DNA from: Monocercomonoides exilis PA203
Lineage: Eukaryota; Protista; Preaxostyla
Direction of reading: 5' to 3'
Length of the DNA: 64,000 nucleotides
Assembly: GCA_001643675.2 (NCBI GenBank)
Contig: LSRY02000008.1
Span: 310,001-374,000, forward strand
Shown: positions 10,904-48,689 of the stretch, piece by piece
Layout: each line of letters opens with the position of its first letter
Numbering within the stretch: position 1 is the first letter of the stretch
Program-made: the position numbers and the translations under genes
The notes under the pieces: generated by a model
Databases searched by the model: none
Told to the model about the DNA's origin: nothing
What the model saw: only the letters and a program-made list of their open reading frames with translations

Positions 10904-12205
10904 ATGGGAAACGAAGCGGGCTCTTTAAACCCAAAGATAGATGAATGTGGAATGACAAGAGCAATGAATTGGATTGTGGAGAACAAAACAGAGCCACCAA
11001 AATATATGAGACATGATATTTCGATAAGGAATATGCGGGGAAGGACAATGGCAATGCTGTGGATTCAGTTTGTTAAGAACGAGCCACCAGAATGGATGAG
11101 ACATGACAATGAAGTTGCAGACAAGGATGGATGGACAATGGCCATGACCTGGGTCATTCATGTCAAGGCAGAACCACCAGAATGGATGAGACACGATATT
11201 ACAATAAAAGGAGGTATTTGGGAACAAACAATGGCTATGCTATGGATTGAATATGTGAAGACAGAACCACCTGAATGGATGAGACACGATATCACATTAA
11301 AAGATCATTTTGGATCAACAATGGCTATGTGGTGGATTCAATCTGTTCAAACCGATCCACCGGATTGGATGAGACATGATATAACGCGTGCAGATAAAGA
11401 TGGAAAAACAATGGCTATGAAGTGGATTTTCTGGGTTAAAACAGACCCGCCAGAATGGATGAGACACAACAACACACTTACCGATAAGTTTGGGCGAACA
11501 ATGGCAATGCATTGGTTAAAGGAAGTTAAGACAGAACCTCCTTTATGGATGATAATGGATAACACACAAAGCAAGAAGGATGGGAGGACATTGTCAATGA
11601 AGTGGATTGAGGAGAAAAAAACAGAGCCACTGGAATGGATGAGGCATAGCATAACACTTGTGGATGATAACGGAATGACGATGGCAATGCACTGGATCCA
11701 ATCTGTAAAATCAGAGCCACCAGAATGGATGAGACACAATATTACACTTGCCGATAGCTGTGGTAAAACAATGGCTATGTGGTGGATTCAAGACATCAAA
11801 ACAGAACCTCCAGAATGGATGAGACACGATGTAACACTTAACGATAAGAGAGGAAATACGATGGCAGATCATTGGAGAAGTCTTATTAAGAGTGAACCAC
11901 CAGAATGGATGGAAAATGGCATTATACAGGTTGACAACGAGGGGAAAACAATGGCTATGTTGTGGATTGAACGAGTGAAAACAGAACCGCCTGTCGAAAT
12001 TCGACATGATGCTTCAATTTCCGATAAGGATGGAAAAACAATGGCTATGTTGTGGATCAAAAATGTGAAGACAGAGCCACCAGAGTGGATGAGACACAAC
12101 ATTATGCAAGCTGATTCTGATGGAAGGATTTTGGCTGAATTTTGGGAAATCTATGTGAGAAGTGATCCACCGATATGGATGATATACCAGCCATCCGAAC
12201 ACTGA
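10904..12205 (+). CDS. 30-aa Met/Trp-rich ankyrin-like repeat protein, copy 1 (14 units)
   Basis: Open ORF, ATG at 10904 (MGNEAGS). Consensus unit DxxGxTMAMxWIxxVKTEPPEWMRHDITLx, 90-bp period with one codon insertion. Confidence 0.88.
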   Translation: MGNEAGSLNPKIDECGMTRAMNWIVENKTEPPKYMRHDISIRNMRGRTMAMLWIQFVKNEPPEWMRHDNEVADKDGWTMAMTWVIHVKAEPPEWMRHDITIKGGIWEQTMAMLWIEYVKTEPPEWMRHDITLKDHFGSTMAMWWIQSVQTDPPDWMRHDITRADKDGKTMAMKWIFWVKTDPPEWMRHNNTLTDKFGRTMAMHWLKEVKTEPPLWMIMDNTQSKKDGRTLSMKWIEEKKTEPLEWMRHSITLVDDNGMTMAMHWIQSVKSEPPEWMRHNITLADSCGKTMAMWWIQDIKTEPPEWMRHDVTLNDKRGNTMADHWRSLIKSEPPEWMENGIIQVDNEGKTMAMLWIERVKTEPPVEIRHDASISDKDGKTMAMLWIKNVKTEPPEWMRHNIMQADSDGRILAEFWEIYVRSDPPIWMIYQPSEH

Positions 12206-12462
12206 TACAGATTGAAGAATTGAGGGAACGCATTTCATTATTTAGAATAAAGCCGGAACATCATTAGGAATAATGCAATATGTTTAACAAAGTCATTATT
12301 TTTTATCCTTATCACCATGTGCTGAATCAAATATATCTTGATCAAACTTTAAAGATTGATGGGAGGAGGCATTGAAATCGATGATGTTGATGGGAATAAA
12401 ACGGCTAATTGCAGAGAAAATCGTGTTGAAACAAAGCCATTTCTTTAAAAGATAAATTGAAT

Positions 12463-13010
12463 TTTTCATATCAAATGTTTATTTTATGGATCCGAAGATT
12501 TCTTGTAGTTTTATTTGTGCCAACAGGCACACAAATATCTGGGCAGCAGCTTTGCATCATTTCAACGATTTTAATGATATTTGCTGAACTTTTATCTTTT
12601 TGCTTGGTCTTTTTATTTTTCTTTTTTTGTATTTTTGATATTCTTCAAAGAATATTCATTTCAATCCATTTTCTTTTTATTCTCACTTGTTTGTATAACT
12701 CCGCGAATTGTTGAAAGGATTTCTGTCAATTTTAATAGTTTTTTTAAAATTCAAAGCGAGCAATTATTATTTGAGAAAATAATTTTTGCTGACTTTTATT
12801 TTACTCTTTGAGAGCATCTCCATTCACTCTATTGGTTTGAATGATGTGCGTGTTTTTATTCATCCAGTTCAACAGTTTTGTCAATCCATTACAAATATTA
12901 TTTTTATTTTCATAAAGAGAATAATTTCTCTTTGTTTTTGAGAATTTTGACAACTTCTTTTTCTTCATTTCGAAAACATTTCTATTCGCCTAATATTCTG
13001 ATTTTTTTTT
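12463..13010 (+). repeat. Duplicated ~550-bp non-coding 3' flank, also at 48692-49230
   Basis: Collinear near-identity, e.g. TTTGCATCATTTCAACGATTTTA and TTTCATAAAGAGAATAATTTCTCTTTGTTTTTGAGAATTTTGACAACTTC in both copies. Confidence 0.9.
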
Positions 13011-14803
13011 TTCAATTTTTATTAAAAAAACTGTGTAATTCTTTTTGAAAAGTCGTGATTAATTGAAATTTTGTCCCATCGCAGTTAATTATTTTTCATT
13101 CCGTTGCCATTATTCTCATGAAAAATTTCAACGTTCACTATGAAGTTTGCTTCTTCATTACAAACCTCTTTGGAAGAAAAAGACAATTTGAAATAAAAAT
13201 AATATTTCTATTTTTTGACCAAAATAAAAATTGAGAATTAATGATGAACATGTGATGTAATTTTTCGGTTTATCTTGTAATTGCTGATTCATGAAATTTT
13301 CATGGAATATTTCGATTCTTTACTGACAATTAGCAAGAGTTCTGATTATTGCTAAAGCTTAAATTTAGATAGAATATGAAAATGCTCAAAATGATAATCA
13401 ACAATTTGTGAAATCAAATATGGATCACACAAGTTCAAATGAACAAAATAATAATCAAAACCGATGGTTTGCAACTTGTTTTTTCCTTTTATATTTATAT
13501 TTATTGTGGATTTTTCATATTCACATTTTCAGCACTCTTTTCCAAACACAAAAGTCCGCACATTGATAAACGGGCTTCACTGCAGCGCTCACACCTCTGC
13601 TTTTGTCACTGGCTTCTTTATGCACACAATCAACAGTACCCAATCACTCTGTCTAACAATTTCTTCTCCTCCTTCCGAAACAATATCATTGAAAATTTAA
13701 CTCTGCTCGATGCAGATTCTCCTTCTCCAGAAACCTCAGCAACACTATTTTCTCTGCCTCCTGCGACATATTCGCTAAATCTCTTCGCTCTGGCTGTTCA
13801 GCAGCGTGCTCTACCACAAGTATCTAATGTCCTCCTTCTCGGATGCAGAAAATACAATGCCCTCGCATTGCTGCCTTCTCCCTCCACAATGCACACAAAC
13901 AGATACAGCTCAAAATCCAGATGGAAATGGCTCCGCTCAATTGGATCAGTTTGAAAAGAAGCAACGTGAAGATATAATTTCCTCTTCTCCTCCTTCGAAT
14001 GTTCCACCTGCAGTAACTTCGCAATTGGTGCTGTCTCTTCTTCTTCCTCAACACCACATTCACAACCATCTGCAAAAGAGCCACAAGAAGCAGAAGCAAA
14101 GCTAATGCTCATTTTCTGCTTCCATATTCAACAATTTCTTTGAACTGATCTGAACATCCACTGTTAAAGAGTTGTCAATCTGAAATGCTCTTCGAGGCAT
14201 AGCCCAAGCATTGCCCATCCTCTGTATTGCATTCGATTGCATCAACGTTCTCAGCATCAGCACTGCCAATGCACCTGCTCCTGCCGTCTCAACCATCCAC
14301 ATTGCCATTCTCCTACCCAACATCACCTCTCTTTCATCTGCTTCGTTTGCCTCATCTGCCATTTTGCTTATATTACACACACAAGATGACATGGCATCAG
14401 CCTAAGCTAGTCGTTGTTCCGGATATTGCATCCTCCTATTGCGCGCATGTCACTCAGCGGTACGACGTTGAAGACAATCTTCTGCATATCAAACAGAATC
14501 CCTTCTATTTTTTTTGAACAAGCTCCTTCAGCTTAACCGTCGTTGTCTCCTTCGTAACGCAAACTCAAATCACCTTCACTTCCATCGTTCTGATTCGAAT
14601 TTTCATCTTGTGACAAATCCCCTTCTTCGATGAATGCTTGCTCTAATACTGCTTTCCCCTTCCTCTTCCTTCTCCTCTCTTTTTTCTTCTTCCTCAAACA
14701 ACCCCTCAACATCCAATCCCGATTGATGTCCTGTCTCAGATACCTTCTTCTCTTCTTTCTTGTCTCTCGCTTGCGACTTCAGCTTCTCTTTCTGTCCTTT
14801 CTC

Positions 14804-14870
14804 CTCCTTCTCCTTCTCCTTCTCCTTCTCCTTCTCCTTCTCCTTCTCCTTCTCCTTCTCCTTCTCCTTC
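14804..14870. repeat. (TCCTTC)n microsatellite
   Basis: Perfect hexamer tandem array. Confidence 0.9.
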
Positions 14871-17306
14871 TCTTCCTCTTCCTCCTCTCCATCTCCATAC
14901 GACCCATATCCAATCAACGACGCACAGACACCACAAAGTGTCCTATTGAAAACTCACTTGGCTGCATCATTAGTGAATGTTGCATTTGATTCGCTCTGAA
15001 GACGCATGTTGAAACAAAATCCATTCGAACATCTCGTTCTGTTAACTACCGCGTATGTGAAGGATTATCTGAGTCATCTGCAGGGTCGTTTGCTTCGTCG
15101 TTTTCTTCGTCTTTTTCATCGTTTTCATCGTTTTCTTCAACTTCGCTCACTTCGCAGAAAGAATATGGAGAAGCAGATCGATGATGAAGGATATGAGAAG
15201 AAATCGAAGAAAAACGTGAAAAAGAAGAAGTATTAAATTGCTCAACTTTTAATTGAGGAAGAGCAGGCAAACCAGGCAAAGAAGAAGAAGAGGAGGAGGA
15301 GGAAGAAGAAGAAGAAGAAGAAGAAGAAGATTCAGATGCGTTTCTGTGAAAGTGACCTGTCTCTCTTTTCGGTTGGGCTGATTTTCTTGTCTTCTCTGTG
15401 TAACTATTTTCATTCTTTTGCCATCTTCTCCTTGTTTCATTCATCTGTGTTGGGTAAAAGGTTATTAACATTTTCCAATAAAAAAATCGCCAAAAGCGAT
15501 GTCTTTTCGAGCAATGCTCAAAAAGAGTGGATTTTGTTCAGATTCACTCAATTTTCGCTCATTCCGCATCCTGAAGAAGGCAGAAGATGAAGATAACGTA
15601 GAAGAAGATAATCAAATACAGCTATCAGCAATAAAATATGAAGAAGAAGAAGAGCAGATGTAGTGAATAAAATTCTTCTCTCTCTTTCTCTCTCTGTTGG
15701 CGTGGCTTGTGGTGAATTTGAACCAAATAAGAAGAAGTCAGCAGCATTTCCAGCAGAATATTCGGCAAAGTTAGAATCACCCAAATTAACAGCGCTTTCA
15801 GTAAAAACATTTTGTGTGTTGAATGAAACATCCATTGGCCATTGAAATGTTTCTGATGCAACTGGAGCACTAACAGATGGAATGACGTTGATGCAGATAA
15901 ATCTTCCTCAGATGGATTTTTCCTCATTAATTCCTGTTGAATTAGTTGAATGTGGAAATGTCGGTCGTTTCTTTGTCTTCTTCTATTTATTTTTAAACAA
16001 AAAAGTCTTCTTTGTCTGTTTGATTAGGACTCACAAATGAAAAAAATGAAAAACCATCTTAGAAAAGTTGATCATGTGACATCCAAATCGAAGTTCGAAG
16101 AAATGGTGTATCGCTGTTGCTGTTGTAGAAATTTTATTTTTCCTTTTTCTTCTTTAAAGCCCTCCAATCCCTGGTTCTTTCAACAGCCTGAATGAAAAAA
16201 TAATAATAACTTCAAAAATAAAAATGCATAAAAAAACCTTAAAAACATTTTTATAGGCAATTTTCTGTCTAATATTGAATTGGCAACTGTTCTCTTCAAT
16301 TCAATTTTTTTATTCCTTCCATTTTCAAGTGTTTCATCACCTGATTCGCTAATCGTCCTTTCCAGAAGTCATTTCTTCATCAAGTGCATCGATTTCAAGC
16401 TCTTTTGAAAAATGTGAGATTCATGCATTTTGCTCAAATTCCATCTTTCTCATTGAAAAATGTCCTGTTTTTCGTCTGAAAATATCATCTCCAATTCCCT
16501 TCCCAATCCCTTCATCCTGGGCACTTTCCATATGAATTCGCTGGCTCAACTCGATAGCCACCATGCACAACGAGATATCCCGCTTTCATTCATTTTCATT
16601 CATTTCCGCCTCCTGCCCTGAAAGAAACACAAAATACATCAATAGACAGATATTCATATATTGAAAAATTAATAAACAACAAACTGTTCTTCTTTTCTTT
16701 TTTGTTAACACACTCATTTCCATCATAAAAGGCATCAACAAAATCTCTTCAAGACATCAAAGGATTCATAATAACTTGTATTAACTCAAGTGGTTGCATT
16801 TATCATTGAATCAAAACATTTTCGAAATGGAAATGAATAAACCACTTTCAGAATGCAATAAAAAGCAAAAACCACTTTCTCAACTGCTTATGGGGATTAT
16901 TGAAATAATAAATAAGTGTTTGGCAACCGTTAAGGTCTTATGAAGCTTGGCTATCATCAAGTTCGGTAAAAATCACAAAAAATCGGAAAAAAGGTAGAAT
17001 ATATCAAAAGTTTGAAGCATTCAAGAAGATATTCTAATAATAATTATGGACAAACACAAACAATAAAAAAAGAGCAATAAACCCAAAGAAAAACTTCGTT
17101 TGCTGAATTTGGAATAATTATTGCGAGAAGAAAAACAATGCAATTGCTATATTGGGACAAACATCCGAATTTTCTCTCTGATATAATAATCCTCATTTTA
17201 ACCACAAATATTAGAAAAATTGTATTGCTGAATGATCAAGTTTTTCATTCCATAATTTATTTTTTGTTTTATTATTTTTTGGATCAAACTTAAAAAGCCA
17301 AGCAAA

Positions 17307-19760
17307 ATGGGCAATAACGCGGAAACAATGAATAAACAAAATATTAGATGCATATTCACAAGTGCGATGCGATGGATTATGGAGTTCAAAACCGAACCAC
17401 CTGAGAAAATAAGACATAAAAATACGATTGCTGATTGGTTTGGAAATACGATGGCTATGTTGTGGATTCAATTTGTTCAAACAGAACCACCAGAATGGAT
17501 GAGACACGACATTGCACTTGGAAATAAGAAAGGAGAGACAATGGTCATGATATGGATTCAAGATGTCAAGACAGAACCTCCAGAATGGATGAGACATAGA
17601 ATTGCGCTTGCTGATAAGAATGGATATACAATGGCCATGTGGTGGATTAAATCTGTGAAGACAGAACCTCCAGAGTGGATGCGACATAGCATTCCATTGC
17701 ACACCATTTATGGCGAAACAATGGCTATGCTATGGATTCGGTTTGTTCAAACCGATCCACCGAAATGGATGAGACACGATATTTCACTTGCTGATAAAGA
17801 TGGAATGACAATGGCAATGTATTGGATTCAGTTTATTGAAAAGGAGCCACCAGAATGGATGAGGCATGACATTACACTTGACAATAAGGACGGATTCACA
17901 ATGGCTATGCATTGGATTCACTTTGTCGAGACAGAGCCACCAGAATGGATGAGACACGATGCAACACTTAAAGATTCTGATGGATGGACAATGGCCATGC
18001 TGTGGATTCGGTTTGTCCATTCAGAACCGCCAGAATGGATGAGACATGACATTACACTTAGTAACAATTTTGGTGAAACAATGGCGATGAGGTGGATTAA
18101 TAATGTCAAGACAGAGCCACCAGAATGGATGAGACATGACAAGGAGCTTGCAGACATTGATGAATGTACAATGGCCATGTGGTGGATTCAGTTTGTTCGA
18201 ACAGAACCTCCAGAATGGATGAGGCATGACAAGGAGCTTACAGACATTGATGAATGTACAATGGCCATGTGGTGGATAAGGGAAGTCAAGACAGAACCAC
18301 CGGGATGGATGAGGCATCGCAATTCTCTTGAAGACAAGGAAGGAAATACGATGGCAATGAAGTGGATTCAATTTGTGAAGAAAGATCCACCAATGTGGAT
18401 GAGACACGATATTACACTTGGTGATAAGAAAGGAGAAACAATGGCTATGATATGGATTCAAATTGTTCAAACCGATCCACCGAAATGGATGAGGCATTGC
18501 AATTCACTTGAAGACGAGAACGGAAGGACAATGGCAGATTATTGGAAAATATATGTTAAAACTGAATTACCGAAATGGATGACATTTGATGATACATTGA
18601 AAGATGAAAATGGACAAACAGCGGGAATGAGATGGATCATTGAGAACAAGACAGAACCACCGGGATGGATGAGACACGACAACACGCTTGCCGATAAGTT
18701 TGGACGAACAATGGCCATGCTGTGGATTAAATATGTGAAGACAGAGCCACCAGTCTGGATGAGGCACGACATTGCGCTTCGCAATAGCGGAGGAGAGACA
18801 ATATCAATGCTATGGATTATGGAGACAAAATCTGAACCACCAGAATGGATGAGACATGACAAGGTGCTTGCAGACATGGACGGGTGGACAATGGCCATGA
18901 CGTGGATCATTCACGTCGGAAAAGAGCCACCTGATTGGATGAGGCACGATGCAGAGCTTTCTGATAAGAGTGGAAGGACAATGGCAATGCATTGGATAAG
19001 ACATGCAAAGACAGAACCGCCAGAACGGATCAGACATAACATTACGCTTTGTAATAAAGAAGGATTAACAATAGCCATGTACTGGATTTGGTGCGTGAAA
19101 ACAGAACCACCAGAATGGATGAGACACGATATTAAACTTGCCAATAAGAATGAATGGACGATGGCAATGAAATGGATTCAAGAAGTCAAAACAGAGCCAC
19201 CTGAGTGGATGAGACATGATGCAACATTAGGGAATATCAATGGAAATACGATGGCCATGTTGTGGATTCAGGTTGTGAAGACAGAACCACCAGTCTGGAT
19301 GAGGCACGACATCATACTCTGTGACAAATATGGATCAACAATGTCCATGTACTGGATTGAATATGTCAAAACAGAACCGCCGGAATGGATGAGACATGAA
19401 ATAACGCGCAAAGATAACGATGGTGAAACAATGGCGATGCTGTGGATTAAATATGCGAAGACAGATCCTCCGGAATGGATGAGGCATGAAGCTTCATTTG
19501 CTGATAAAGAAGGATTAACAATGGTAATGCATTGGATTAAAAACATCAAAGCAGAGCCGCCAGAATATATGAGACATAGAATTGCGCTTGCTGACAGGGA
19601 TGGAAGGACAATGGCGATGTGGTGGATAAGGGAAGTCAAGACAGAGCCACCGGAGTGGATGAGACATTACAATTCACTTAAAGACAAGAGTGGAATGACA
19701 ATGTCAGATCTCTGGAAATATTTCATTGAGACTGAGCCACCACTTTGGATGAAAGGTTGA
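17307..19760 (+). CDS. 30-aa Met/Trp-rich ankyrin-like repeat protein, copy 2 (27 units, 817 aa)
   Basis: Intronless open ORF starting MGNNAET. Exact 90-bp period from 17361 to 19701 with no indels. Confidence 0.92.
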   Translation: MGNNAETMNKQNIRCIFTSAMRWIMEFKTEPPEKIRHKNTIADWFGNTMAMLWIQFVQTEPPEWMRHDIALGNKKGETMVMIWIQDVKTEPPEWMRHRIALADKNGYTMAMWWIKSVKTEPPEWMRHSIPLHTIYGETMAMLWIRFVQTDPPKWMRHDISLADKDGMTMAMYWIQFIEKEPPEWMRHDITLDNKDGFTMAMHWIHFVETEPPEWMRHDATLKDSDGWTMAMLWIRFVHSEPPEWMRHDITLSNNFGETMAMRWINNVKTEPPEWMRHDKELADIDECTMAMWWIQFVRTEPPEWMRHDKELTDIDECTMAMWWIREVKTEPPGWMRHRNSLEDKEGNTMAMKWIQFVKKDPPMWMRHDITLGDKKGETMAMIWIQIVQTDPPKWMRHCNSLEDENGRTMADYWKIYVKTELPKWMTFDDTLKDENGQTAGMRWIIENKTEPPGWMRHDNTLADKFGRTMAMLWIKYVKTEPPVWMRHDIALRNSGGETISMLWIMETKSEPPEWMRHDKVLADMDGWTMAMTWIIHVGKEPPDWMRHDAELSDKSGRTMAMHWIRHAKTEPPERIRHNITLCNKEGLTIAMYWIWCVKTEPPEWMRHDIKLANKNEWTMAMKWIQEVKTEPPEWMRHDATLGNINGNTMAMLWIQVVKTEPPVWMRHDIILCDKYGSTMSMYWIEYVKTEPPEWMRHEITRKDNDGETMAMLWIKYAKTDPPEWMRHEASFADKEGLTMVMHWIKNIKAEPPEYMRHRIALADRDGRTMAMWWIREVKTEPPEWMRHYNSLKDKSGMTMSDLWKYFIETEPPLWMKG

Positions 19761-21250
19761 ATTTATCAATTCATGTGTTAGTTTTAGGATATTGAAAACA
19801 TTTTCGATGTTTGTTCGAATAAACATTTGATCAAATCATCGAACTTAAGTTCCGTTGCAATTACACAGAATCCATGTTGCATTTCATGTTCCTCTCTCTT
19901 CTCATTTTTGTATCTTCATATGCATCGATATGAGATCGGACTCACTTCAATGTATTTCCATTTCAATCTCTTTCCTCTTATCCACATTTGTCTTATCATC
20001 TCATTCAACAATAAATGATTCACACTTCAATCTTTTAATAATTATTTTTATAATAATAATTACTATTATTTTATTCGTTGTTGTTGTATTTATTGATGCT
20101 GCTGTTTGTTTATCAAAATTAATACACCAAAAATTATTCAATTTCAATATTAATATTTCAACTTCGAATAAAATTTTAATTTCACAGTATTTTTCAGCTT
20201 TTTTTGTTGATGAATATAATAAAAATACAAGCTATCGTTCAATTAATGACACACTGTCACCATAATAATAATTATTATTTGGTAGAAAAAAATAACTTTT
20301 CTATTATTTGAAGATATTATTAATTACAATTATCGACAATCTGATGACATATTAAAAATGAATATTTCATTCTTTTTGAATAACCTCATGATAAAAACTT
20401 TTCGTTGAAGAACACAAAAAGGAAAAAAAGTGAAAGAAGTCTTTGTGTATCATTAATAATTGTTGTTACTTATATCAATATCATTTATTATCACATTTTT
20501 TCCTGAAAATGAGTTTCATTCATTTTTGGATTTTCTTTATTCAAAAATTACGAAAACTACAAAATCGATCATTTTTCTTCAATAAAATGCATGAGATAGA
20601 AAATTTTGAAACAAAGTCTTTTGTTGATATAATGGTGATTATTTTTGGAAAAAAATTTTATTTCTTAAATTTTTTTCAAATGGTGAGAAATATGGTCTTT
20701 CAAGCTTTTTATGAACAAAGTATGAAAATATTATTTAACTTATAACATTTTGAAACTTAACCAGATTTCAAAATGAATTTAATTTTCTTATCTGGGGTTA
20801 AAAATTTTGCTTCATGCTTTTTCATTGAAAAAATTGCTCTTTTTATTGACTTTTTGTGATAAAAAAGTCTCAATAAAAATGTGTCCATTTTTTGACATTC
20901 GTGAAATGTTGGAAAACTTAATGTTTTGATTACAACGATGCCTGTTTTCAAATTTGAAAACCAAATTTCTTTAGAAATCTGAGAAAGAAAAATAAAGTTA
21001 TGAGTGAAGCAATTTTTTCTTGCTTTGTGCATAAAAAGCTTGAAAGTCCGTATTTTCCCCCATCTGCAAATAAACATCATTGATATTATATCATTATGTT
21101 TTGTGACATGCAAAGTATTTTAAAATATTAACCCATTTATTTCAAATTTTTTGATCACAAAAAGTTCATCTGAGATGCATAATTTTTCAATGAAAATGCC
21201 TGAAGTCAAATTATTTGTCCCAAATGTAATATTTCTTTGGAGACGAATTG

Positions 21251-21821
21251 GGACAGAATTCTTGCATTTGTGAAAAAATAAATGATTTGTTCCAAACTTT
21301 TTCTACAATCGTATTATTACACTTCTGACATTCTCGTGCAAAAAAAAATATATAAAATTTAAAAAGTTGAAAATAGTCTTTGAAAGAACTGTGTGGAACT
21401 ATATTCACAAAGAAATAAATTTTGTCCCATATGGCTGATCCTTTTTGAAATCACACTTTCGTTCGAGTTTTGATCAAAAATTTAATCTCAATGGTATTTT
21501 GAAAAAATGAACTTAAACTGTTTATACATGTTGTTCATGATGTTGTTATCGCAGAAACAAATTTTTTTTCAAAAATCCAATTGAGATAAAAATTTTGATC
21601 AAAACTCGAACAAAAGTTTGATTTCAAAAAGGGTCAGCCATATGGGACAAAATTTATTTCTTTGTGAATATAGTTCCACACAGTTCTTTCAAAGACTATT
21701 TTCAACTTTTTAAATTTTATATATTTTTTTTTGCACGAGAATGTCAGAAGTGTAATAATACGATTGTAGAAAAAGTTTGGAACAAATCATTTATTTTTTC
21801 ATATATGCAAGAATTCTGTCC
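21251..21821. repeat. Long near-perfect palindrome (arms ~255 bp, spacer ~55 bp), foldback/MITE-like
   Basis: 21251-21507 is the reverse complement of ~21563-21821. The ORF track gives nearly the same 65-aa peptide on both strands. Ends GGACAG...CTGTCC. No clear TSD. Confidence 0.9.
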
Positions 21822-22329
21822 TGCACATAAAAAAAGATCAAAAATTGAAAAAATAAAATAAAATGAGGTTTTTATTGATCAGTGAACAAGTACTGATTTT
21901 TCATGAGTATTTAGTTCGTATTGACGAGACATTTATTTGTTTTATTTATTTATGAAAAAAAGCATAACTTTATAATGTTTCAAGTTAAAAAGAATTTTTT
22001 GATCAAGTTTTTTAAAAAAAAAATTGAAAAATCTATCTTTAAAATAAAAATTGAAGTTTCCAGACCTGCAAAACAATTCCAATAATTGGAAAATAAAATA
22101 TTGAAAAGAAAAAAAATTATGAAGAAGAACAAAGAAGAAGAAAAGAAAACAAAATTTTTGAAACCAATTTATCAATAATAGTTATTTATCTTTTTTCCCC
22201 TCACCTTTGTATAGCCAACAAATCTCCATTCCTTTTATTCGATTCATCGGATTCATCAAACGTTAAACGAAATCGTGGAACATTTGATAAAGCCAAGTTC
22301 AACAGCTAACTTTCCCTCATTGCCCAGAA

Positions 22330-22525
22330 CAAAATCGTTGCCAGCAATGGAACTGATGCCGATGCCTGTGGCAGACACCAACAGACCCCATGTGCCACCA
22401 TCGAGTATGCCCTCAACGGATTCATTTCCCTCCTCCAAGACGCCTCTTTCACCATCCTTTCCTCAACATTTGATCCAACTCAAACACTCACTTTCAGCGT
22501 AGCTGAATCAAAAATCACTGGAAAT
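22330..22525 (+). pseudogene. Fragment of beta-helix surface-protein-like family (G.D...CG....PC.TI.YA motif)
   Basis: Translates as VASNGTDADACGRHQQTPCATIEYALNG. Upstream in-frame stop, isolated fragment. Confidence 0.5.
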
Positions 22526-23320
22526 GATATACTTTCTCATAATTTTCACAACTATTTCTTCCAATTCTGATAATTTTCCATATCATGTATATATTCATGA
22601 ACTTTCATATCACTTTCAACTGAAGCACATATCATTGCTTGTTTTTCAAAAATCCTTAACGTCAGCTCAAATAAAAACACTTCTTATTCATTTCTTCATT
22701 TATTTTCTCTTCTGAATCAAATGCAAATTACGTTCGTTGCTTTGAGGAATCATATGTTTTCCTTTTTTTCAAAATGAATTTATGCAAATTAGAAGGCTTT
22801 TCTTAAATGTCTGTTTCCTCATCTTTCCATTTCAATTTGTCTATCTGCCATTCGCTCCATTTTTTATGGAATAGCACTTCAAATATTGATTTTCCATAAA
22901 TAGGTTTATCTCCTCACTATTTCATCTTCCGCAACTTTTTGAAGGTGCACGATGTTGTGAAATCTCTCGAAAACAATCCCTGCAACTGTTTGTTCAAAGA
23001 AAAAATTTCCCGCCTTGTTTTTTCTGTTTCCTGAAATTCTTTCAATCTCAAAATGAAAAAGTCAGAATCGATATTCTTGTTGATTTCGTGCCTTCTGATC
23101 AGCTTTTCTTGGTTTTATATAGTTCTCTCTATTTCATATAACTTCAGCTGGCATTCTATGTTAGAAGAAATGATTATCTTTGCTTCTGAATAGGAATGAA
23201 AGACGAGACCTGATGATGAATTCGAGGGGAATTGAATGAAAGAGAAGGAGACGAAGACAGAGTAGGAAGTTAGAGTGGAGGAAGAGAGCCAGGAGCAGCA
23301 GGACAAGCAGAAGATAGAAG

Positions 23321-26306
<2,986 letters not shown>

Positions 26307-26359
26307 TCCATTTCCATTCGCCGAATTCTCTTCTTTCGATTAGCTGCATCAAATCATCT

Positions 26360-33869: not shown

Positions 33870-33924
33870 GAAACTAGTTATTGTGTATGCTTAGCTGGCA
33901 CTCTATCGGAAGTGTGCTGGACAT

Positions 33925-38400: not shown

Positions 38401-39200
38401 TCACACAACAAGCCACACCTTCCGCTTTTGCTTCCGTTCAGCAAACATCTAAGCCTCAGTCTTCTTCATTGGTATCGAATGTTGCAACAAACGCACAGGA
38501 TATGAATGGATCTTCAAACGCTGCTGCTGATGGAGCTAATACAACTTCAGTTGGCAATGCGATAAATGCATCAGGAACAGTAAGAGGAGGAGTAGAACAT
38601 CCCTGTCAGATAAAGATAGACCAATTCTCAACTACACTTCCACATAAGCTGCAGACAAGCATCACCTCCTCTCAGTAACATCTCTTTTAACTTTCGCAAT
38701 CTCCTTTTCCTTCTCCCTCTTCTCCGTCATTCACATCAAATTATTCTCCATCTTCAATTTATATTCCTTTTCCTTCGACTCATTCTCTTCCACTTCAGCA
38801 TCGTCAACAAACATTTCCTTCATTTTCTTCTCAATTTGATCTTTTTCTTCTTTTTTTCTACCAGCCATCTGAAGTAATTCCTAAGAATTCTGCGATGCGG
38901 AGTCTTTTTTCTTTGTAGACTTCCTCATTTAAAAAAGGATGCTCTATCATCTTTTCCTGCAACTTTCGTCCCTGCTCTGCTTATGTCAATGCCGCAATCT
39001 TCTTCTTCCTCTTCCTCTTCCTCTTTTCTTTCTGTTTCACTTCTCACCTTTCCTATATTCCTCTCATCCAATCCCAAAAACTCTTAAACAAAGACATGAA
39101 ATTCTCCGAATCCGTGAGAAATACGATGAACTCAATACTTATTAATTCGTCTTCTCCGCTTCTGCCTTCTGCGAAATCTCATAATCCTTCTTTTTCTTCT
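35460..39200 (+). pseudogene. Degraded acidic/Ser-rich host gene fragment(s), unidentified
   Basis: Coding-like composition broken into many short same-strand ORFs by stops and frameshifts. Confidence 0.3.
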
Positions 39201-40559
39201 TCGTTCTCTTCCTCTTCTTCCTCTTCTTCTTCGACATTTTTTATTATTTTTCTTCTCCACCGACTTTTTCTGATTTTTGGGCTTCTTCTTCCTGTTCATT
39301 TCAAACTTCTTCATAATAACCAAAAACATCATTTCACACTCTTTTACCATCATCGCTCACTTCATTTGATTGGATTTCTTCATTTTTGGCATCTGTATAA
39401 GATATTTTTTGAGAATATAAAAGGGCATTATCCAAAAAAAGAAACACGTTGAAAATGAGAAGAAGATTGATAAGATGACGAAGAGAGTGAATATATAGAG
39501 AAAAAAGAACATTTTCAGACAGAATACGATGAATGGAAATTGGATGGAAAATAAATTGAAGAGATTTTTAAAGAAAAAAAGAAAATATGGAAAAGATGAA
39601 AAGTTTGAAGAGATAACGATGATGAACCAAAACAGAAAGTGACAACAAAGTTTGAAGCAGTTCGTTGAATATCTGAATCATCCTATATGTAACCACTCAT
39701 TCATGACAGCCCTAAAGCACAGATACGAAGAGCGAGGAAGGGCACTGAGAGTTGGTGCTCAGGAGAACTCATTCGTTGTTGAAAATCCACTTATTGAAAC
39801 CAGGGAACGTTCATTTTTCTTTCCAAAGCAATGAAATGTTGAGTACGGCTGCATCTGAGCAGATGAGGTTGCTGAGCATGGAGTGGTTATTCTGCATAGC
39901 GCTGCTATTGTTGGTGAGTTGAATGATGAAGACGTGAACACAACATTTAATCTTGCCTTACAAGGGAGAGGTGAAGACGGAGTCATCATACTGAAGAAGC
40001 TTTTTGGCTGATTTGATTTTCAAGGAGAAGAAGAAGGGGGATTGGCCAGAGGATTGAGAAGAACAACGCTGCCCGCAACAACGGCAAGATCTGTTGCAAT
40101 GAGATGCTCGAGGGAGCAGCTGGAGCCATCGTTAAACAGGAACACAGGCTGGAAAAACGGATAGCAGATGTGTTGATGCTTGGGAGAAAGAGAGGGAGTT
40201 AGCGGGAAGTGCGCGAAGATCAAAGCAGGTGATGTGGAGGGAATGGACAGATATGTTGGAGATGCAAAGGGTACTTCGGGAAGCACAAAGGTTAGGGTTA
40301 GGTTAGGCGGACAGGCTGGTCGTCTGCGGAAAAGAGGGAGGAGGACACATCAAGGTATCAATCGAAGAAGTCGAAGACTGTGGCGCAGGTGGATATGAAA
40401 GTGGAATGGAAGAAGTGGAAGCTGGAGCGCATGCAAGTGATGAGAAAGGTGACAACAGCAGAGTGGTCGTGTTGCAAAAAAGGAGACAGATCAGAAGAAA
40501 TGGCGATGGGTGTGGCGAAGTGAACAGGGACAAGACTCCACGCAACGGATTTGACGTGC

Positions 40560-41130
40560 TTTTCAGCAAGAGAGGTCGGGGCTTCGATGGAGGAGGAGGA
40601 GGAGATCAAGAGGATGTTGCCGATGGAAAGGGCGATGCGGAGGTTGAGGATGGAGAGGTGGATGGGAGTGGCGCCAGCAGGGCAGGAGCAGTCGAGGAAG
40701 AGGTCTCCACCCCTGCCTGCTGTGCGGGAGCAGATGCACTGTGTTAGGATGCACGCCGACACACTCAGCTGCGACTTGTCGCAGTCAAGGCACATTATTG
40801 CGGCTCCGCACTCGGCCGACTCTTCGCTCACGCAGCTGGTGAGCACACACGCCTCAGCAGCATAGTCGATGGCATATCCCCTCTCTGCATACACCACAGC
40901 TGGCCCATTGCCTGTGCGCACGATGTTGGTGATGTTGGCAGGGTCTAGAGCGATGGCTGTCCTGGGGTCTGGGATAGCCAAGCCAGTCGAAGCAGCCAGA
41001 GCAGGTGGGCAGACGGTCACGAGGGGAGTGCCAGTGAGCAAAGAGGAGAAGATTAAGAGTGGTGTGAATGTCGCAGAAGTAGATAAAGCAGCGATGAAGA
41101 GAAAAGGGCGCGACAAGGATACGGAGGCGA
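40560..41130 (-). pseudogene. Beta-helix family gene fragment
   Basis: ANITNI...CGAAIMCLDC...GRGGDLFLDC within ORF 40358-41365. Homologous to 43400-43760 on the + strand. Confidence 0.55.
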
Positions 41131-42029
41131 GGGCACAGTGGTCGAGGGACATATTCCCTTCTGGTATAAGCACGATAACAAATGCAAGTGGCGTTTGTGG
41201 AGTTAGCATGGAAAACAAGAAGCCAGACAACAGCAGAGCATCTGAGGAGGAAGACATCCAAATGTATAAAAAAGACGAGGAAGAGGATAGAAGACAGAGA
41301 GAGAGAAAGATGAAAAAAAGCATGTGAAGAATTTTGTTTGATGGAAGCATTTTTTGTGCGAACAATGAAAATTCACAAATTGGATTGTTTTATTTTTTAA
41401 AACAATGTTTTTTTTATTTTCATCTGTCACTTCTTTTAACGAATAAATCTTTTAAAGTTCTTTTTTGAATTATTTGTTATTAAATCGAAGGAAACTGCAA
41501 ACTGTTGGTCACCTGTGAAATATCTTGCATAACTATCATATTTGTGTTTTTGTATTTTTGTTAATTGTTTTTTTTCAACATATTTTTTTGGATCTTCAAC
41601 GTCAATTTTGAACTTTCTTTTCTATAACATTATTTGACATTCTTCATTTAAAAAATTGATTTATTGAGCATTGAAACAATTATTATCTTGCTTTTCAAGC
41701 AAGATAACTTATGTTTTGCAATGTTTATTGAAATTTCGATATTTTTTTCGGAAATTATTTTTATATCAAGATATTTGTTATGAAAACAACTTGTGATGAT
41801 TAAAAAACAACTTTTAAATAACAACAACAATATATTAAACTATATTTTCGCACAATTTTACAAATATTTTATCGATTCAACCCCACCATTTATGAAAAAA
41901 ATTTATGATCAAACTTCGTAATTTTTTATGATATCAAAAAAAATCACCCAACTTGTCTTTTTTAACTCATTTAACATTCAAAACTTTTCCATTCAAACCA
42001 ATTGAATATTATGAAAAACAATTTTGAAT

Positions 42030-42430
42030 ATATTATAGAAATACAATTTGTGCATAAAATCCCGGACAAGATCGATTTCTCAATAACCGCAAGAGGGATA
42101 ATTCTGACTATTTTCTTCAAAACACATCTCATCAATACAAACTCATTTGAAATACAAAACTTTCAAAATAGCTTCATTTATGCACAGAAGAAATTTATTT
42201 TTGAAAAAAACCAGAGAAATAGGATTTTGAGTTTCTCCGATTTTTCATTAATAATTTTTTCTGAGCACAAATGAAGCTGAAGTGAAGTCTTGTTTTTCAA
42301 ATGAGTTAGTATTGATGAGGTGTATTTTGAGGAAAATTGTCAGAATTATTCCTCTTGCGGTTATTGAGATCTCGACTTGTCCGGTATTTTTAGCGATGTC
42401 CGGTATTTTATGCACAAACTGTATGATATT
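42030..42430. repeat. Diverged inverted repeat (arms ~165-180 bp), with a third partial copy near 42540-42610
   Basis: TGCATAAAAT...CTCAATAACCGCAAGAGG...GCTTCATTT is mirrored at 42269-42414. Confidence 0.85.
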
Positions 42431-43399
42431 TTGTATCTCCGAATATTTCCTATTTTTTTGTTGTTGTTTCATTCAATCAACACGAAAATGAAACTCTCAT
42501 ATTTTTAAAGAGTTTTCATTGATAATATTTATTTCGAGTATAATTATCAGAATTTTTCCTTTTGCAGTCATTGAGAAACCGATATTGTCCTGTATTCTTT
42601 GCATAATTCATTCAATAAAGCATTAATTCCGATTCTTTTGTTGAAAAACGGTTTTTGAAGAATTCCATGTGATTGGGAAAGAATTTTTGTTAATTTTTTA
42701 TCAATAAAAATTATTACTGCAAAAAAATATTAAGTAAATAATAATACAAAAATTCTTTTGCATGATTTTCATTTTAGATTCCGGTTTTTTTCATTTTGTT
42801 CATTTATTGGTATTTGTCACATAATAATTAAATATTTATGTTTATAATATTCTTATTCAAAAACAACATTTAATGTTTAAATGAAAAAAAAAAAAATAAT
42901 TTCTGTTGGACAAAAATATCAAAATAAAAAAAGAAAATAAATAAAGAAACAACAATTCGAAATCATTGTTAACTGTTTGTTGCACAAACAATTATTTTAT
43001 TTGTTTATATATTATTGGACAGAAAAATAAATTAAATAAAAATCGTTATTCAATTGATTTGTTGATCAAGTCAAATTATAAAAATGTGATTGAAAATGTT
43101 TTTGAAAAAACTGAATATTTCATGAAGTTACACCTTTTCTTCTAAAATATCATCCTACGCACCAATAAACACGATTCTCCTTACGAATCTTCAAAGCATT
43201 GCTTCTCCTCTGGTTTTCTTTTTCTTTTCCTCATCATTTATCATTGATTTAGGCATCTACCCTTTTGACTTCGCTGCTTTTGTCTTGTTGTTCGAATTCC
43301 GCACAGACTCAGTTTATGCTCGTTGCTCATGCAATGGTTAATAAAACAGAAGGGTGCATGTATCTCAAAAGCTGAACCATCGTCCACGTATCCTCATCA

Positions 43400-43760
43400 T
43401 TTTCTTTTTTCCACATCGTTTTTGCATCCCCTTCAATAAAACTTGTATTTCTCCGCTCACTTTCTCTTTGCTTGTTGGGCCTGCCTCTCGTGTTGCCATC
43501 TGCCCGTTTGTTCTGGTTAACTCCGCTGATTCGGGGCTGCCTGCCCCAGACACCATAATAGTCATCGTTCTGGAATCCGCAAACATCACCAACATCTTTC
43601 ACACACACAAAAAAATTGGCTCTGTTTTTGTGTGCATGCAATGAGGAGATACGCAGTCAACTGCCTGACCGAGTCATCTGAATTCACAGGCTGTGTTAGC
43701 GAAGAGCAGGTCTGAGGGGGGGCTGCAATAGCGTGCCTCGACTGCAATCCGCCTGCAAAC
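43400..43760 (+). pseudogene. Beta-helix family gene fragment (paralog of 40560-41130)
   Basis: ESANITNI...GGAAIACLDC with stops and a frameshift. Confidence 0.55.
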
Positions 43761-46276
43761 GCTTCTTCCATCTGTTTCTGCATCCTCAACCTCTTCTTCG
43801 CCTTGAACGAAGTCTTTCTCCGGTGCTCTTGCATCTTCTATCAAGTCAGTATATTCCTCTTTTTCCCCAACTTCACAAGGCCTTCTCTAACCACAAAAGC
43901 CACCATTTACTGCTCCAGCATCTACCATCCCTGCTGAGCTCCAACCTCATGTCGATCTTCTTCCCTTCATTGCCTTCTTCCTCGCCCAACAGATTTTAGT
44001 TAGCCAGTTCACAGGTTCCTCCTCTTGACTCCTATGCTTCCCTCTCTGCAGCAGTCCTTCACATCGACAGCTTGAGTTGCCTCACCAATATACGAGTCGG
44101 GTCTGTCTTGAAAAGTCTTGTTTCTGCTCGCTTCGCCTTCTTCAGCTCTCTGTTGTTGTGTTTCTCAACACCTGCATCCTCACTTTCTGCCCCTTCTCCT
44201 TCCACTCCTCCTTCGAATCAGTCCACTCTTCACTCTTCTGCCTTCTCGATAGATCACTCACTGCTTCCACTTGGATCTTTTCTCCATCAGACAAGCATAT
44301 CCATCTTAGCTACACGCTGCTTTGAGCTCTCCCCAATTCCTGCCTCTTTCTCTTCCACATCAACCTCTTCGCTCTCAAGGCAGCTTCAACAACGTTCGTG
44401 TTCGACGATGGAATAAGTCGCTTTGAAAAACATCTTTTTGCAACAGTTCTCGCAATTATTAGCAAAAGCGATGTTCTTCTTCATTTTTCTAAAACAAATC
44501 TGTCAGAAAGCTCCTTCAGAATAACATTCTCTTCCTTCACATCCATCTCGTTCAATCAGCTTTGCCACAACATATAAGAGCGAAACAGCTGCACAACTGC
44601 AGTCAATCTCCCCAACTGTTCTATTGATCTGAACGTGTCTTCCTCATCTCTTGCCAGCTCATCCGTATTCCTTCATTGCTCTTCAGTGGAACTTGAGGCA
44701 TCTTTGACAATTGGGTTCACTTAGCAGCCACCACAAGGCTTCATTGGGATACCTCTCAGACAAGAATTAAGCTTCCGATGCATTTAACGCTCCAGAGGAA
44801 CCGGAAGGACAAGATTCACAAAAAGTATTAAAGACACAAGAGAGAGAGAGAGCGTGTGTGTGTGTATGTGTGTGTGAATGGAATGCTTTTCTGTTCCATT
44901 AAACGAGCGCAACAACTGATATCAAAGATACGAGCATCTCTGGTGCACAGTTTGATAAAATCTCCACCAATGGCAGGAAGTGAGTGTGAGCGTGGATGCC
45001 TCAATTGCTTATTGTTCTCCTTCAGCACTCCCAACATCCAAAATAACTATTTCTCTTCCTGGACCAACTTCATCTGCTCCAATTCCTGTGCGCTCTGCAT
45101 TGACTCGCTCAAAGGAGGAGGCTATTGTGTGCGACGTCGAACCTTCTTGTTGCTCCTCAACCGCTGATTGGGCACTCCACAGCTTTTCCTCTCAATTTCT
45201 CTCTTTTTATTTTTATTTTTATTTTTATTGTTATTTTTAATCCCCACAACCTATTTCACCTATTTATTTAAAATATGTTAAACTTTTTCTCCTTTTTGTT
45301 GTAACCACAAAATACATTATCAGCAATTGAGGTATCAAAATTGAAAGATCTTATAAATATGCATTCAAAGAAGAAGAAGAAGAAAAGGAAGAAGAAGAAG
45401 AAAATTATTCTATTCATCATCATCATCACCATCATCATCTTCTTCTTCTTCTTCTTATCCTCCTCCTCCTTTTTCTCCTTTTCCTTTTCCTTCTCCTTTC
45501 TCATTTTCACAATTAATTTTTCTTCTCTCACTTCTCATTCTGAATGATGTTGCGTGTCAGATTCTTTTCCTGTCCATCTGCTCTGAACATTCCCATTTTC
45601 CATTCAAACATCCCTTTTCTCTCTTTTCTCTCTTTTCTCTCTTTTCTCTCTTTTCTCTTTTCTCTCTTTGGCTTTTGTCTTTTCATTCAGCCATTTCTAT
45701 TCCAAAGGCAGCATTTCAGCCTCTCTTCAGAATGTGCATGTTCTCCATCAGAGTGAATGGCATTCATCTTTCCCTTCTCTTCTGCCACACACACACTCAC
45801 TCACTCAACTCTTGTTGTGGCTGATACAAATGAATGCATCCCTGAAGAGATTTGAAATGTGAATGAAAAAATAAAAAATAAAATAGAAATGAATTGGTGA
45901 AAATTCATCTTATGTTTCTGAGAGTTTTGGCGCAAAAGCAAAAGAGCAGAAAATATAAGACTCATCATTAATTCGCAGGTTTGCTATTTTTCACAACTTG
46001 GCTTTTCATTTTCATTCACTTACAACTTGTTAAACGAACGTCAAAAGAAATAAAAATAAAAATAATTAATATTAAATTTTTTTCTGTTTTGAAAAAAATG
46101 TTTGAATAACATAATGCAACACTGCCAAAAATCATGCAATCACTTTGTGCTCATTTTCTTATTTATTAAAAGATGATAAACAGTTTTTAAAAAAATATTC
46201 AAATATGATCATATATATAATAATTATTTCAAATTATAGATTTTAACGATTGACATTTTTTCTGCTTATATTGCAG

Positions 46277-48689
46277 GACGAGCAGCGAAACCGAAGCTTT
46301 GAGCGGTAAAATAAGATATACAACAGATATGCAAAAATTGAAAAGTGATCCATTGAAAAGGGACAAGGATGGAAGAACAGAAGCAATGCGATGGATTATT
46401 GAAAAGAAGTCAGAACCTCCGTTGGAAATGAGACATGATATAACACTTAAAGATTCTTATGGATGGACAATGGCTATATTATGGATTCAAGATGTCAAAA
46501 CAGAACCACCAGAATGGATGAGACATGAAACAACACTTAAAGATTCAGATGGATGGACAATGGCCATGCTGTGGATTGGATATGTTCAGACAGATCCACC
46601 GAAATGGATGAGGCATGACATCACACTTCGCAACAATAACGGAGTAACAATGGCCATGATATGGGTTGCAAATGCTAAGACAGACCCACCAGAGTGGATG
46701 AGACATAACAACGAAGTTGCAGACAAGGAAGGAAATACAATGGTCATGCATTGGATAAAGGAAATCAAGACAGAGCCACCAGTCTGGATGAGACATGATG
46801 CTACACTTGTTGATAATAACGGATGGACAATGGCCATGCTGTGGATAAAGCTAGTTAAAACAGATGTTCTGAAGTGGATGAGACATGATATAAAACTTAC
46901 TAATAAGAACAGAGAAACAATGGCGATGATATGGATTAATCATGTGAAGACGGAACCACCACATTGGATGAGACACAACATTACACTTGCCGATAAGAAA
47001 GGAAGGACAATGGCCATGTTCTGGATCGAATCTATTGAAAAGGAGCCACCAGAATGGATGAGACATTGCAATTCATTGAAAGACAAGAAAGGACGGGCAA
47101 TGGCTGATTATTGGAAGTTATTTGTTAAAACTAAATTACCGAAATGGATGACATTTGATGAAACATTGAAAGACAAAAATGGACAAACAGCGGGAATGAG
47201 ATGGATTATTGAGAAAAAGACACAACCACCAAATTGGATGAGACACGACAACACACTTGCCGATAAGTTTGGACGAACAATGGCAATGTTGTGGATCAAA
47301 AATGTGAAGACAGAGCCACCAATGTGGATGAGGAACGACATCACACTTCGCGATAGCGGTGGAGAGACAATGGCTATGTTCTGGATTCAGTTTGTTCAAA
47401 CAGAACCCCCAGAATGGATGAGACACGATATTACACTTGCTGATAAAAACGGATGGACAATGTCCATGCTTTGGATTCAAGAGATCAAAACAGAACCTCC
47501 AGAATGGATGAGACATGACATAGAACGAATCGATGTCCTGAGAAATACAATGGCGATGAAGTGGATCAAATATGTTCAGACAGAACCACCAGAATGGATG
47601 AGGCACGATGCTGCACTTTGCGACAAGAACGGAAGGACGATGGCCATGTGGTGGATTGAATGTGCTAAATCAGATCCACCAGAATGGATGAGACACAACA
47701 ACACGCTTGCTGATAAGATTGGACGAACAGTGGCGATCCTGTGGATCAAAAGTGTCAAAACAGAGCCACCACATTGGATGAGACACAACAACACACTTGC
47801 TGATAATAACGGATTTACAATGGCTATGTATTGGATTCAATTTGTTCAAACAGAACCACCAGAGTGGATGAGGCATGACATCGCACTTCGCAACAATAAC
47901 GGAGCAACAATGGCTATGATATGGATTTCAAGTATCAAAACAGAACCACCGAAATGGATGCGACATGAGAATGAAATTGCAGACAAGGAAGGATGGACTA
48001 TGGCGATGTGGTGGATAAGGGAAGTCAAGACAGAGCCTCCGAAGTGGATGACAATGGATAACGCGCAAGGCAAGAAGGAAGGGAGGACATTATCGATGAA
48101 GTGGATTATGGAGAAAAAAACAGAACCTCCTGAGTGGATGAGACATGACAATACGATTGCAGATAAATTCGGACGGACAATGTCTATGATATGGATCGTA
48201 TATGTGAAAACAGAACCCCCAGAATGGATGAGACATGACAAGGTGCTTGCAGACATGGATGGATGGACAATGGCCATGAAGTGGATCGTTCATGTCAGAA
48301 AAGAGCCACCTGAATGGATGAGACATGATGCAGCACTTTCTGATAAGAGTGGAAGGACAATGGCAATGAATTGGATTTTCTGGATTAAAACAGACCCGCC
48401 AGAATGGATGAGGCACAGAAACGCTCTTGAAGATAAAGACGGGGAAACGATGGCCATGGGATGGATTAAATATGTGAAAACAGAGCCACCAGAATGGATG
48501 AGACATAGAATTGCGCTTTCTGACAGGGATGGAAGGACAATGGCGATGTGGTGGATAAGGGAAGTCAAGACAGAGCCACCGGAGTGGATGAGGCATTACA
48601 ATTCACTTAAAGACAAGAGTGGAATGACAATGTCAGATCTCTGGAAATATTACGTTGAGACTGAACCACCAATTTGGATGAAAGAATGA
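46277..48689 (+). CDS. 30-aa Met/Trp-rich ankyrin-like repeat protein, copy 3 (26 units); 5' exon/start uncertain
   Basis: Open ORF 46299-48689 with exact 90-bp period 46381-48631. Likely acceptor TTGCAG ending 46276, or start at ATG 46329. Confidence 0.9.

Follow-up and report, generated by a model that had tools for sequence, protein, structure and literature searches.

The ankyrin repeat (Pfam clan Ank: Ank, Ank_2 to Ank_5) is the closest known relative of the repeat family considered here, and its GxTALMxA variant (represented by P0097 and P0139) stands especially near. Ankyrin repeats serve as target-recognition modules in ubiquitin-ligase adaptors such as HACE1, ASB and FEM1, and poxvirus ANK/PRANC proteins are likewise ankyrin-containing ubiquitin-ligase adaptors. 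Metamonads and giant viruses possess big lineage-specific expansions of repeat-only ankyrin proteins, composed of ordinary 33-residue repeats that Pfam recognizes. In the designed ankyrin repeat proteins (DARPins), a fixed framework carries variable surface positions, and the original library of Binz et al. (2003) reportedly randomized ankyrin positions 2, 3, 5, 13, 14 and 33. DARPin paratopes use defined surface positions of the concave face, while N- and C-terminal caps seal the core (PMC8683736, PMC8229355).

We analysed a 64,000-nucleotide stretch of the genome of the protist Monocercomonoides exilis PA203 (contig LSRY02000008.1, here C80:310001-374000; hereafter the window). Three intact open reading frames (ORFs) on its forward strand, genes 1 to 3 (Table 1), consist of 14, 27 and 26 tandem 30-residue units. 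The proteins belong to a large family of divergent ankyrin-type solenoids whose repeat is shortened to 30 residues and which standard domain searches overlook. Like the ankyrin expansions of metamonads and giant viruses, the family is a big lineage-specific set of repeat-only proteins; unlike them, it is not built of ordinary 33-residue repeats that Pfam recognizes. No description of it was found in the M. exilis genome papers or in a wider literature search.

A 30-residue repeat of the ankyrin type

The E-P-P-x-W-M anchor of the unit recurs at a spacing of exactly 30 residues in all three genes, except for one spacing of 31 in gene 1; a single 90-residue anchor gap in gene 3 contains two units whose anchors are degenerate. 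Tandem Repeats Finder detected 90-nt periods at 11169-11865, 17441-19483 and 46428-48596, with DNA identity between units of only 65-67%, which marks them as old and diverged and not as products of recent slippage. Column entropy, computed over 289 units from the window genes and ten paralogues, exceeded 3 bits at columns 3, 5, 10, 13, 14 and 30 and was 2.5 bits at column 2, and it fell below 0.7 bits at T6, A8, M9, W11, I12, P19, P20, W22, M23, R24 and H25. Anchor spacing and entropy together confirm the unit counts and the near-invariant scaffold that an earlier note on this DNA, made from the sequence alone, had described. The note had also named columns 2-3, 5, 10 and 13-14 as variable, correctly, and had overlooked column 30.

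The family proteins are rich in Trp (7%) and Met (10%), and the variable sites have a composition of their own. Across the 38 family ORFs and 845 units on which our unit-level analyses rest, pooled variable sites contain 4.5% Trp against a neutral expectation of 1.2% (roughly 4-fold), and Trp accounts for 17% of column 5. Trp, Tyr, Phe and His together make up 21% of variable sites versus 15% expected from neutral codons. This non-neutral composition fits a surface that is in use. The 845 units present 649 distinct six-residue combinations at variable sites and 117 different pairs at columns 13-14. Basic and acidic residues are balanced at these sites, and the isoelectric points (pI) of the three proteins are 5.8, 6.0 and 8.9.

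None of the three proteins matched a Pfam Ank family, even at E values up to 1, and short sub-threshold or spurious matches to UBA_7, Pkinase, YycE-like_C and ASCH were set aside as noise. A sequence-profile search of the PDB returned no relative, only a chance match to Titin (E 0.97). Structure prediction was carried out with AlphaFold2 (AF2) on seven regular units of gene 2 together with an in-register alignment of 25 paralogous fragments, affording a model with a predicted local distance difference test score (pLDDT) of 94.9 and a predicted template-modelling score (pTM) of 0.88. Each modelled unit has a hairpin-like loop and two helices, one of 9 residues (columns 7-15) and one of a single turn (columns 21-23), and adjacent hairpins are occasionally bridged. 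All of the top 50 Foldseek matches in the PDB were ankyrin or DARPin structures (E about 1e-5, template-modelling (TM) score 0.5-0.58). An exhaustive VIA-align comparison with 48,161 representative chains likewise returned only ankyrin structures in its top 50 (Z 14.7-10, 190-209 of 210 residues aligned), headed by the DARPin 6moj_A (Z 14.7), and the seven family units spanned seven ankyrin repeats. Furthermore, an ESM Atlas model of full-length gene 1 aligned with ankyrin clusters at TM 0.68-0.79, Parabasalia clusters among them. Overall, the fold searches returned only ankyrin and DARPin structures and uphold the proposal of a divergent ankyrin-type solenoid in the earlier note.

Sequence comparison leads to the same superfamily. 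A family hidden Markov model (HMM), searched exhaustively against 1.84 billion proteins, matched 246 clusters at E <0.001. Canonical ankyrin proteins were among the matches at whole-library E values of 2.5e-18 to 3.7e-11, and the best single-domain E of the model to any ankyrin protein was 1e-4. Two intermediates, P0005 (29.8 bits) and P0030 (30.3 bits), exceed the Pfam Ank_2 gathering threshold of 27.3 and also score strongly with the family profile. Aligning the family profile to canonical ankyrin repeats with hhalign gave 98.2% probability (E 5.6e-14, 199 columns), for an ankyrin profile whose rows were picked from the family's own matches. Two alignments agree on the register: columns 1-24 correspond to ankyrin positions 1-24 and columns 25-30 to positions 28-33, with the three additional ankyrin residues lying after WMR(H). 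The earlier note had thus placed the unit in the right register with the DARPin consensus.

In this register, variable columns 2, 3, 5, 13, 14 and 30 fall on ankyrin positions 2, 3, 5, 13, 14 and 33. Plotted as a helical wheel, the helix has its variable columns (10, 13 and 14) within one 100-degree arc and its conserved columns (7, 8, 9, 11, 12 and 15) around the rest. By register and wheel, the variable columns would coincide with the ankyrin target-binding surface. Since DARPins were designed after the pattern of natural ankyrins, a natural family that varies at these positions comes as no surprise.

With canonical ankyrin the family shares the D-x-x-G-x-T hairpin motif, the inner helix, the curved solenoid (in the model, with a second helix of one turn only), a unit-per-repeat match, the variable positions, terminal caps and detectable sequence homology. 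It does not reach a Pfam gathering score, and in place of a 33-residue period with TPLH-x-AA and a full second helix it has a 30-residue period, TMAM-x-WI and a 3-residue helix in a one-turn PPEW element. At columns 11-12 Trp-Ile stands in for the ankyrin Ala-Ala, and Pro-Pro lies within the helix-2 segment; the Trp-Ile pair may occupy the space vacated by the collapsed outer helix. A replacement of the second helix, as first proposed, is half right: in the model the helix is reduced to one turn around PPEW, but the segment is still present and the 3-residue loss lies in the loop after WMRH.

Modules, paralogues and selection

Nearly all family proteins start with a distinct unit in which column 13 is hydrophobic, column 14 is Glu and column 15 is polar instead of Val. 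The last unit of each protein has M9 replaced by Asp or Glu and I12 by a charged residue. These substitutions match those expected of capping repeats. In long proteins a C-type unit followed by an N-type unit also recurs internally, and this pair plus the next unit forms a block conserved at 14 paralogous junctions, otherwise-variable columns included. An AF2 model spanning the gene 2 junction (pLDDT 89.5) had a pTM of 0.59, compared with 0.88 for the uniform fragment, and its pLDDT dipped to 61 precisely at the linker. We picture the proteins as beads on a string, gene 2 with 14+13 units and gene 3 with 9+10+7, in which the module junctions are probably flexible hinges. In its Atlas model, however, gene 1 can be superposed over its full length on long ankyrin solenoids, so the hinge is something we infer rather than observe.

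A six-frame search of the M. exilis Oxford Nanopore Technologies (ONT) assembly (82,301,135 bp, 101 contigs) with gene 2 yielded 197 matching segments (from 55 scored candidates of 171). These segments represent at least about 49 distinct loci, whose open frames run to roughly 600-1661 codons. Stop codons interrupt 3 of the 150 listed segments, so the genome-wide copy count that the earlier note had called for finds the loci nearly all stop-free. About 23 loci lie within the first 1.05 Mb of the window's 1.96-Mb contig. Every one of the 38 ORFs consists of repeats end to end, one subgroup carrying an additional acidic tail of ~50 residues, and none has an intron in the repeat region.

Flanking DNA is shared between paralogues, at 81-94% identity, for ~0.6-1.2 kb on the upstream side and 0.5-1.2 kb on the downstream side, beyond which lie high-copy repeats unrelated to the family. 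Along gene 2, the paralogue that matches best changes after stretches of one to four units (91-100% identity), and for units 1-9 no paralogue exceeds 88%. A copy at C80:525 kb, interrupted by a stop codon, matches gene 3 collinearly and almost perfectly. These patterns speak for gene conversion or an exchange of blocks among paralogues. The family most likely grew by local segmental duplication combined with exchange of unit blocks between paralogues.

Three observations concern individual copies. Gene 2 units 10, 12 and 13 have counterparts of 97-100% identity in one paralogue (L019), namely its units 14, 16 and 17. The adjacent gene 2 units 10 and 11 (window 18117-18296) both start DIDECTMAMWWI, indicating a recent internal tandem duplication of one unit. 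An in-frame TGA divides the near-identical gene 3 copy (L005, C80:524165-528373; unit identity 94-100%), which probably represents a pseudogene of recent origin or else an allelic or assembly variant.

Expression was assessed from exact RNA-seq contigs of four runs. They cover gene 2 from 17304, 3 bases before the ATG, to about 20029, spanning the unique 5' end and running across the stop codon into unique 3' sequence, and they contain no GT..AG joints. No contig was found at 16600-17269 or 20084-20600 in any of the four runs, and these silent flanks make DNA carry-over unlikely. Such contigs give neither transcript ends nor levels, and repeats attract paralogous contigs. Across M. exilis genes, the ONT assembly paper reports a mean 3' untranslated region (UTR) of 312 bp and 1.95 introns per gene (PMC8767320).

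Selection was quantified with Nei-Gojobori counts on independent unit pairs under three pairing designs. Pairs chosen by whole-unit identity, a design that disfavours variable-site differences, gave ratios of nonsynonymous to synonymous change (dN/dS) of 0.60-0.75 at variable columns and 0.16-0.22 in the scaffold. Pairs chosen by scaffold identity only gave 1.5-1.6 at columns 3, 5, 10 and 30, with columns 2, 13 and 14 close to 1; these values are biased upwards because the design selects low synonymous divergence and may pair non-orthologous units. The design we judged least biased requires high identity of both neighbouring units, reported here for the two looser flank thresholds, and leaves the tested unit unconditioned. 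These flank-defined pairs (67, of which 23 differ) revealed a dN/dS of 0.55 (confidence interval (CI) 0.32-0.78) at variable columns and 0.17 (CI 0.12-0.25) in the scaffold. The scaffold is clearly under purifying selection, and variable sites change at the protein level about three times faster than the scaffold, yet they do not outpace silent sites. Diversifying selection is not supported at the variable columns, although pairwise averages, being conservative, could miss episodic selection. Overall, the family is expressed, constrained and lineage-expanded.

Probable protein binding and competing explanations

We consider it likely, with a probability of roughly 0.7, that these proteins are cytosolic shortened-ankyrin solenoids acting as modular protein-binding adaptors or scaffolds. 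The unit keeps the ankyrin hairpin and inner helix, its outer helix having shrunk to a Pro-Pro-x-Trp turn. Invariant Trp, Met, Ile and Pro would build the core, and six to seven variable side chains per unit would stand at the positions that form the ankyrin target-binding groove. Units would stack into capped modules of roughly 3-14 units each, and long proteins would comprise two or three modules linked by a conserved, probably flexible hinge. Each paralogue and module would then present a different surface for protein binding, the function that we infer for the variable face.

The parallel with DARPins extends to the fixed framework, the variable surface positions and the caps at both ends. 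In contrast to DARPins, the family is natural, has an additional variable column (10), runs to 27 or more units and places several capped modules in one chain, and selection for new binders is unsupported by dN/dS.

Relatives outside M. exilis provide a clue regarding function. The nearest are metagenomic proteins of 34-45% identity, and 8 of 46 outside relatives have a C-terminal RING finger, which in P0001-P0003, P0006 and P0009 follows the same 29-30-residue repeat. These RING-fused proteins suggest, by analogy, a role in target recognition, and through them the family resembles the ankyrin ubiquitin-ligase adaptors, in which the repeat is the target-recognition module. HACE1, ASB9, ASB7 and FEM1B were also among the VIA-align structural matches. 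Unlike HACE1, ASB and FEM1 proteins, the examined M. exilis proteins lack a RING, SOCS box, F-box or other domain. Five RING matches in the M. exilis genome were considered as family members and rejected, being unrelated proteins without the repeat.

The origin of these relatives is mixed. P0005 is encoded on a eukaryote-like contig. P0007, P0022 and P0038, which carry the ..WI..VKTEPPEWM.HD motif, come from compact, one-directional, virus-like contigs whose genes almost all lack a Pfam match; such contigs include L041 (ENA ERZ27247346 k141_514601) and L036, a groundwater metagenome contig that also has dNK and T5orf172 genes. Such contigs suggest that the short ankyrin type is also found in large viruses or phages.

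Several points count against the protein-binding adaptor explanation. The absence of a Pfam Ank score and the empty PDB profile search do not favour an ankyrin assignment. The family profile also matches a Sel1-like repeat protein (P0107) with a significant summed score, so that summed E values on periodic proteins are inflated. None of the 38 M. exilis family ORFs contains a RING or other effector domain, and a ubiquitin link would hold for the M. exilis members by analogy only. Finally, the RNA evidence consists of contigs from one study and for one gene, gene 2.

An unlikely alternative is that the proteins are structural or cytoskeletal scaffolds, rigid spacers on the oxymonad microtubular apparatus whose variable sites are simply unconstrained, comparable to the Giardia 'protein 21.1' family of ankyrin-only proteins. 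Repeat-only architecture without other domains would suit such a role, a variable-site dN/dS below 1 is compatible with relaxed constraint, and axonemal-doublet ankyrin proteins occur among the structural matches, as do Parabasalia ankyrin clusters among the Atlas neighbours. However, the axonemal matches rank no higher than others, and the enrichment of Trp, Tyr, Phe and His at variable sites argues against pure drift.

Rather unlikely, too, is a diversifying recognition repertoire, in which positive selection and unit shuffling would track viruses, transposons, symbionts or host molecules in a manner analogous to lamprey variable lymphocyte receptors (VLRs) or the repeats of plant nucleotide-binding leucine-rich repeat (NLR) proteins. 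Variation does cluster at ankyrin binding positions, variable-site combinations are numerous, the genes are patchworks, and a large clustered family sits inside transposon-rich DNA; the scaffold-identity pairs, with their dN/dS of 1.5-1.6, also appear to favour it. That design is upward-biased, however, and the flank-defined and whole-unit estimates are both below 1. Furthermore, the proteins lack an effector or signalling domain, and no link to a pathogen or transposable element was found. Diversification had been claimed in the earlier note, which had itself taken a variable-column ratio at or below 1 as evidence to the contrary, and the flank-defined value of 0.55 with its CI is of that kind; no test result favours the symbiont, virus or transposon sensing that it had also put forward. 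A more specific version is doubtful and, in our estimation, quite improbable: 1-4-unit block swaps among about 50-170 clustered paralogues, together with multi-module chains, would furnish an intracellular recognition repertoire against viruses, transposon proteins, bacterial prey or symbionts. Such a repertoire, if real, would give a protist its own equivalent of combinatorial repeat-based immune receptors, with a minimal ankyrin as the scaffold.

It is very improbable that the arrays are modular nucleic-acid readers with one repeat per base, like TALE, PPR or Pumilio proteins. The strict period, the many tandem units and the few variable positions per unit invite the comparison, but the 649 combinations and 117 column 13-14 pairs are far more than a small code would use, the proteins are not basic and variable-site charges are balanced, and the fold is ankyrin, a protein-binding fold. 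A one-repeat-one-base code (TALE, PPR, PUF) was rejected on variable-site diversity and charge, and the same diversity and pI range make the one-repeat-one-ligand code floated earlier unlikely.

Selfish or non-functional repeat ORFs travelling with transposable elements are barely credible, for while the genes are intronless, multicopy and located among hAT, pogo and other repeats, their frames of 600-1661 codons are open in nearly all copies, scaffold dN/dS is 0.17 and RNA coverage fits normal mRNA. An origin as transposon cargo was rejected because the high-copy repeats begin outside the 0.6-1.2 kb flank that paralogues alone share.

The proteins offer a compact, Pfam-invisible version of a very common protein-binding fold and a basis for a new family model, and they explain dozens of previously unannotated genes in a model amitochondriate eukaryote. 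A 30-residue ankyrin in which Trp and Ile apparently offset a truncated outer helix is a possible smaller binder scaffold for protein engineers. Capped modules, hinges and block exchange between paralogues also make the family a tractable system for the study of repeat-family diversification.

Gene ends, flanks and genome setting

Table 1. Positions of the family genes, their parts and flanking remnants in the window.
Feature	Position	Strand	Description
Gene 1	10904..12205	+	433 aa, 14 units of 30 aa; N-terminus MGN
Gene 1 internal cap-like junctions	units 7/8 and 11/12		
Gene 2 upstream region	16723..17306	+	common only to MGN-class paralogues
Gene 2	17307..19760	+	817 aa, 27 units, single exon; N-terminus MGN
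Gene 2 modules	units 1-14 and 15-27		two, capped
Seven regular gene 2 units	17973..18602	+	modelling query
Gene 2 module junction	18513..18692	+	C-cap-type unit (M9 to D, I12 to K), then N-cap-type unit (column 15 polar)
Gene 2 3' UTR, probable	19761..20029	+	~270 nt; RNA contigs cross the stop and end near 20029
Gene 3	46329..48689	+	786 aa, 26 units, three modules; N-terminus MQKLKSDPLKR
Gene 3 homologous C-cap/N-cap junction	47082..47261	+	89% DNA identity to gene 2 junction units
hAT dimerization domain (weak, E 9e-4) and pogo-type DDE_1 domain (E 1.4e-16)	3120-5842 and 49870-51381		remnants flanking family genes

The neighbouring ORFs in the window are transposase remnants of hAT and pogo type. 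The earlier note had set intact family ORFs against decayed neighbours; the family is indeed intact, expressed and constrained, but the contrast simply arises from the many transposons of the region, hAT and pogo remnants among them. Its suggested expression check came out positive, gene 2 being covered by RNA-seq contigs and its flanks bare.

Two N-terminal classes are apparent. The MGN class (MGNNAE.., MGNEAGS.., MGNKAGS..) includes genes 1 and 2 (window 10904-10930 and 17307-17340) and loci L003, L018, L020, L022, L023 and L025-L027. Its conserved Gly2 may point to N-myristoylation and membrane anchoring, even though an acidic residue is common at position 6. MQKLKSDPLKR is the start of the second class. 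The first ATG of gene 3 is at 46329, and the TTG at 46299 that the ORF tool selected is probably not its start; two paralogues have an in-frame ATG ten codons further upstream, at the place where gene 3 has TTG.

At the opposite end, eight loci (L009, L011, L012, L016, L017, L028, L033 and L034) carry an acidic linker and a conserved amphipathic tail of ~30 residues (..LIKEMLQKH..SGK.IHL.IKIE) at the 3' ends of their ORFs. Some 25 codons past the TAG or TAA stop are conserved between acidic-tail paralogues, as might result from stop-codon readthrough or a recent stop mutation. Beyond the stop of acidic-tail members no exons or domains were found, only these ~25 conserved codons.

The region immediately upstream of gene 2 presumably represents a promoter and 5' flank copied together with the gene. 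Further upstream lies a 584-bp repeat (window 16139-16722) with dozens of genomic copies. Several of these form inverted pairs ~7-8 kb apart (for example, C35:253153-253737 and 260751-261335; C21:247839/255320; C58:1875119/1882396), and the pairs look like terminal repeats of an element of ~8 kb. Downstream of gene 2, short tandem and inverted repeats at 20670-21215 are followed by a long palindrome (window 21251-21821) of ~570 bp that matches its own reverse complement at 89%; a second copy lies at C80:550516-551082.

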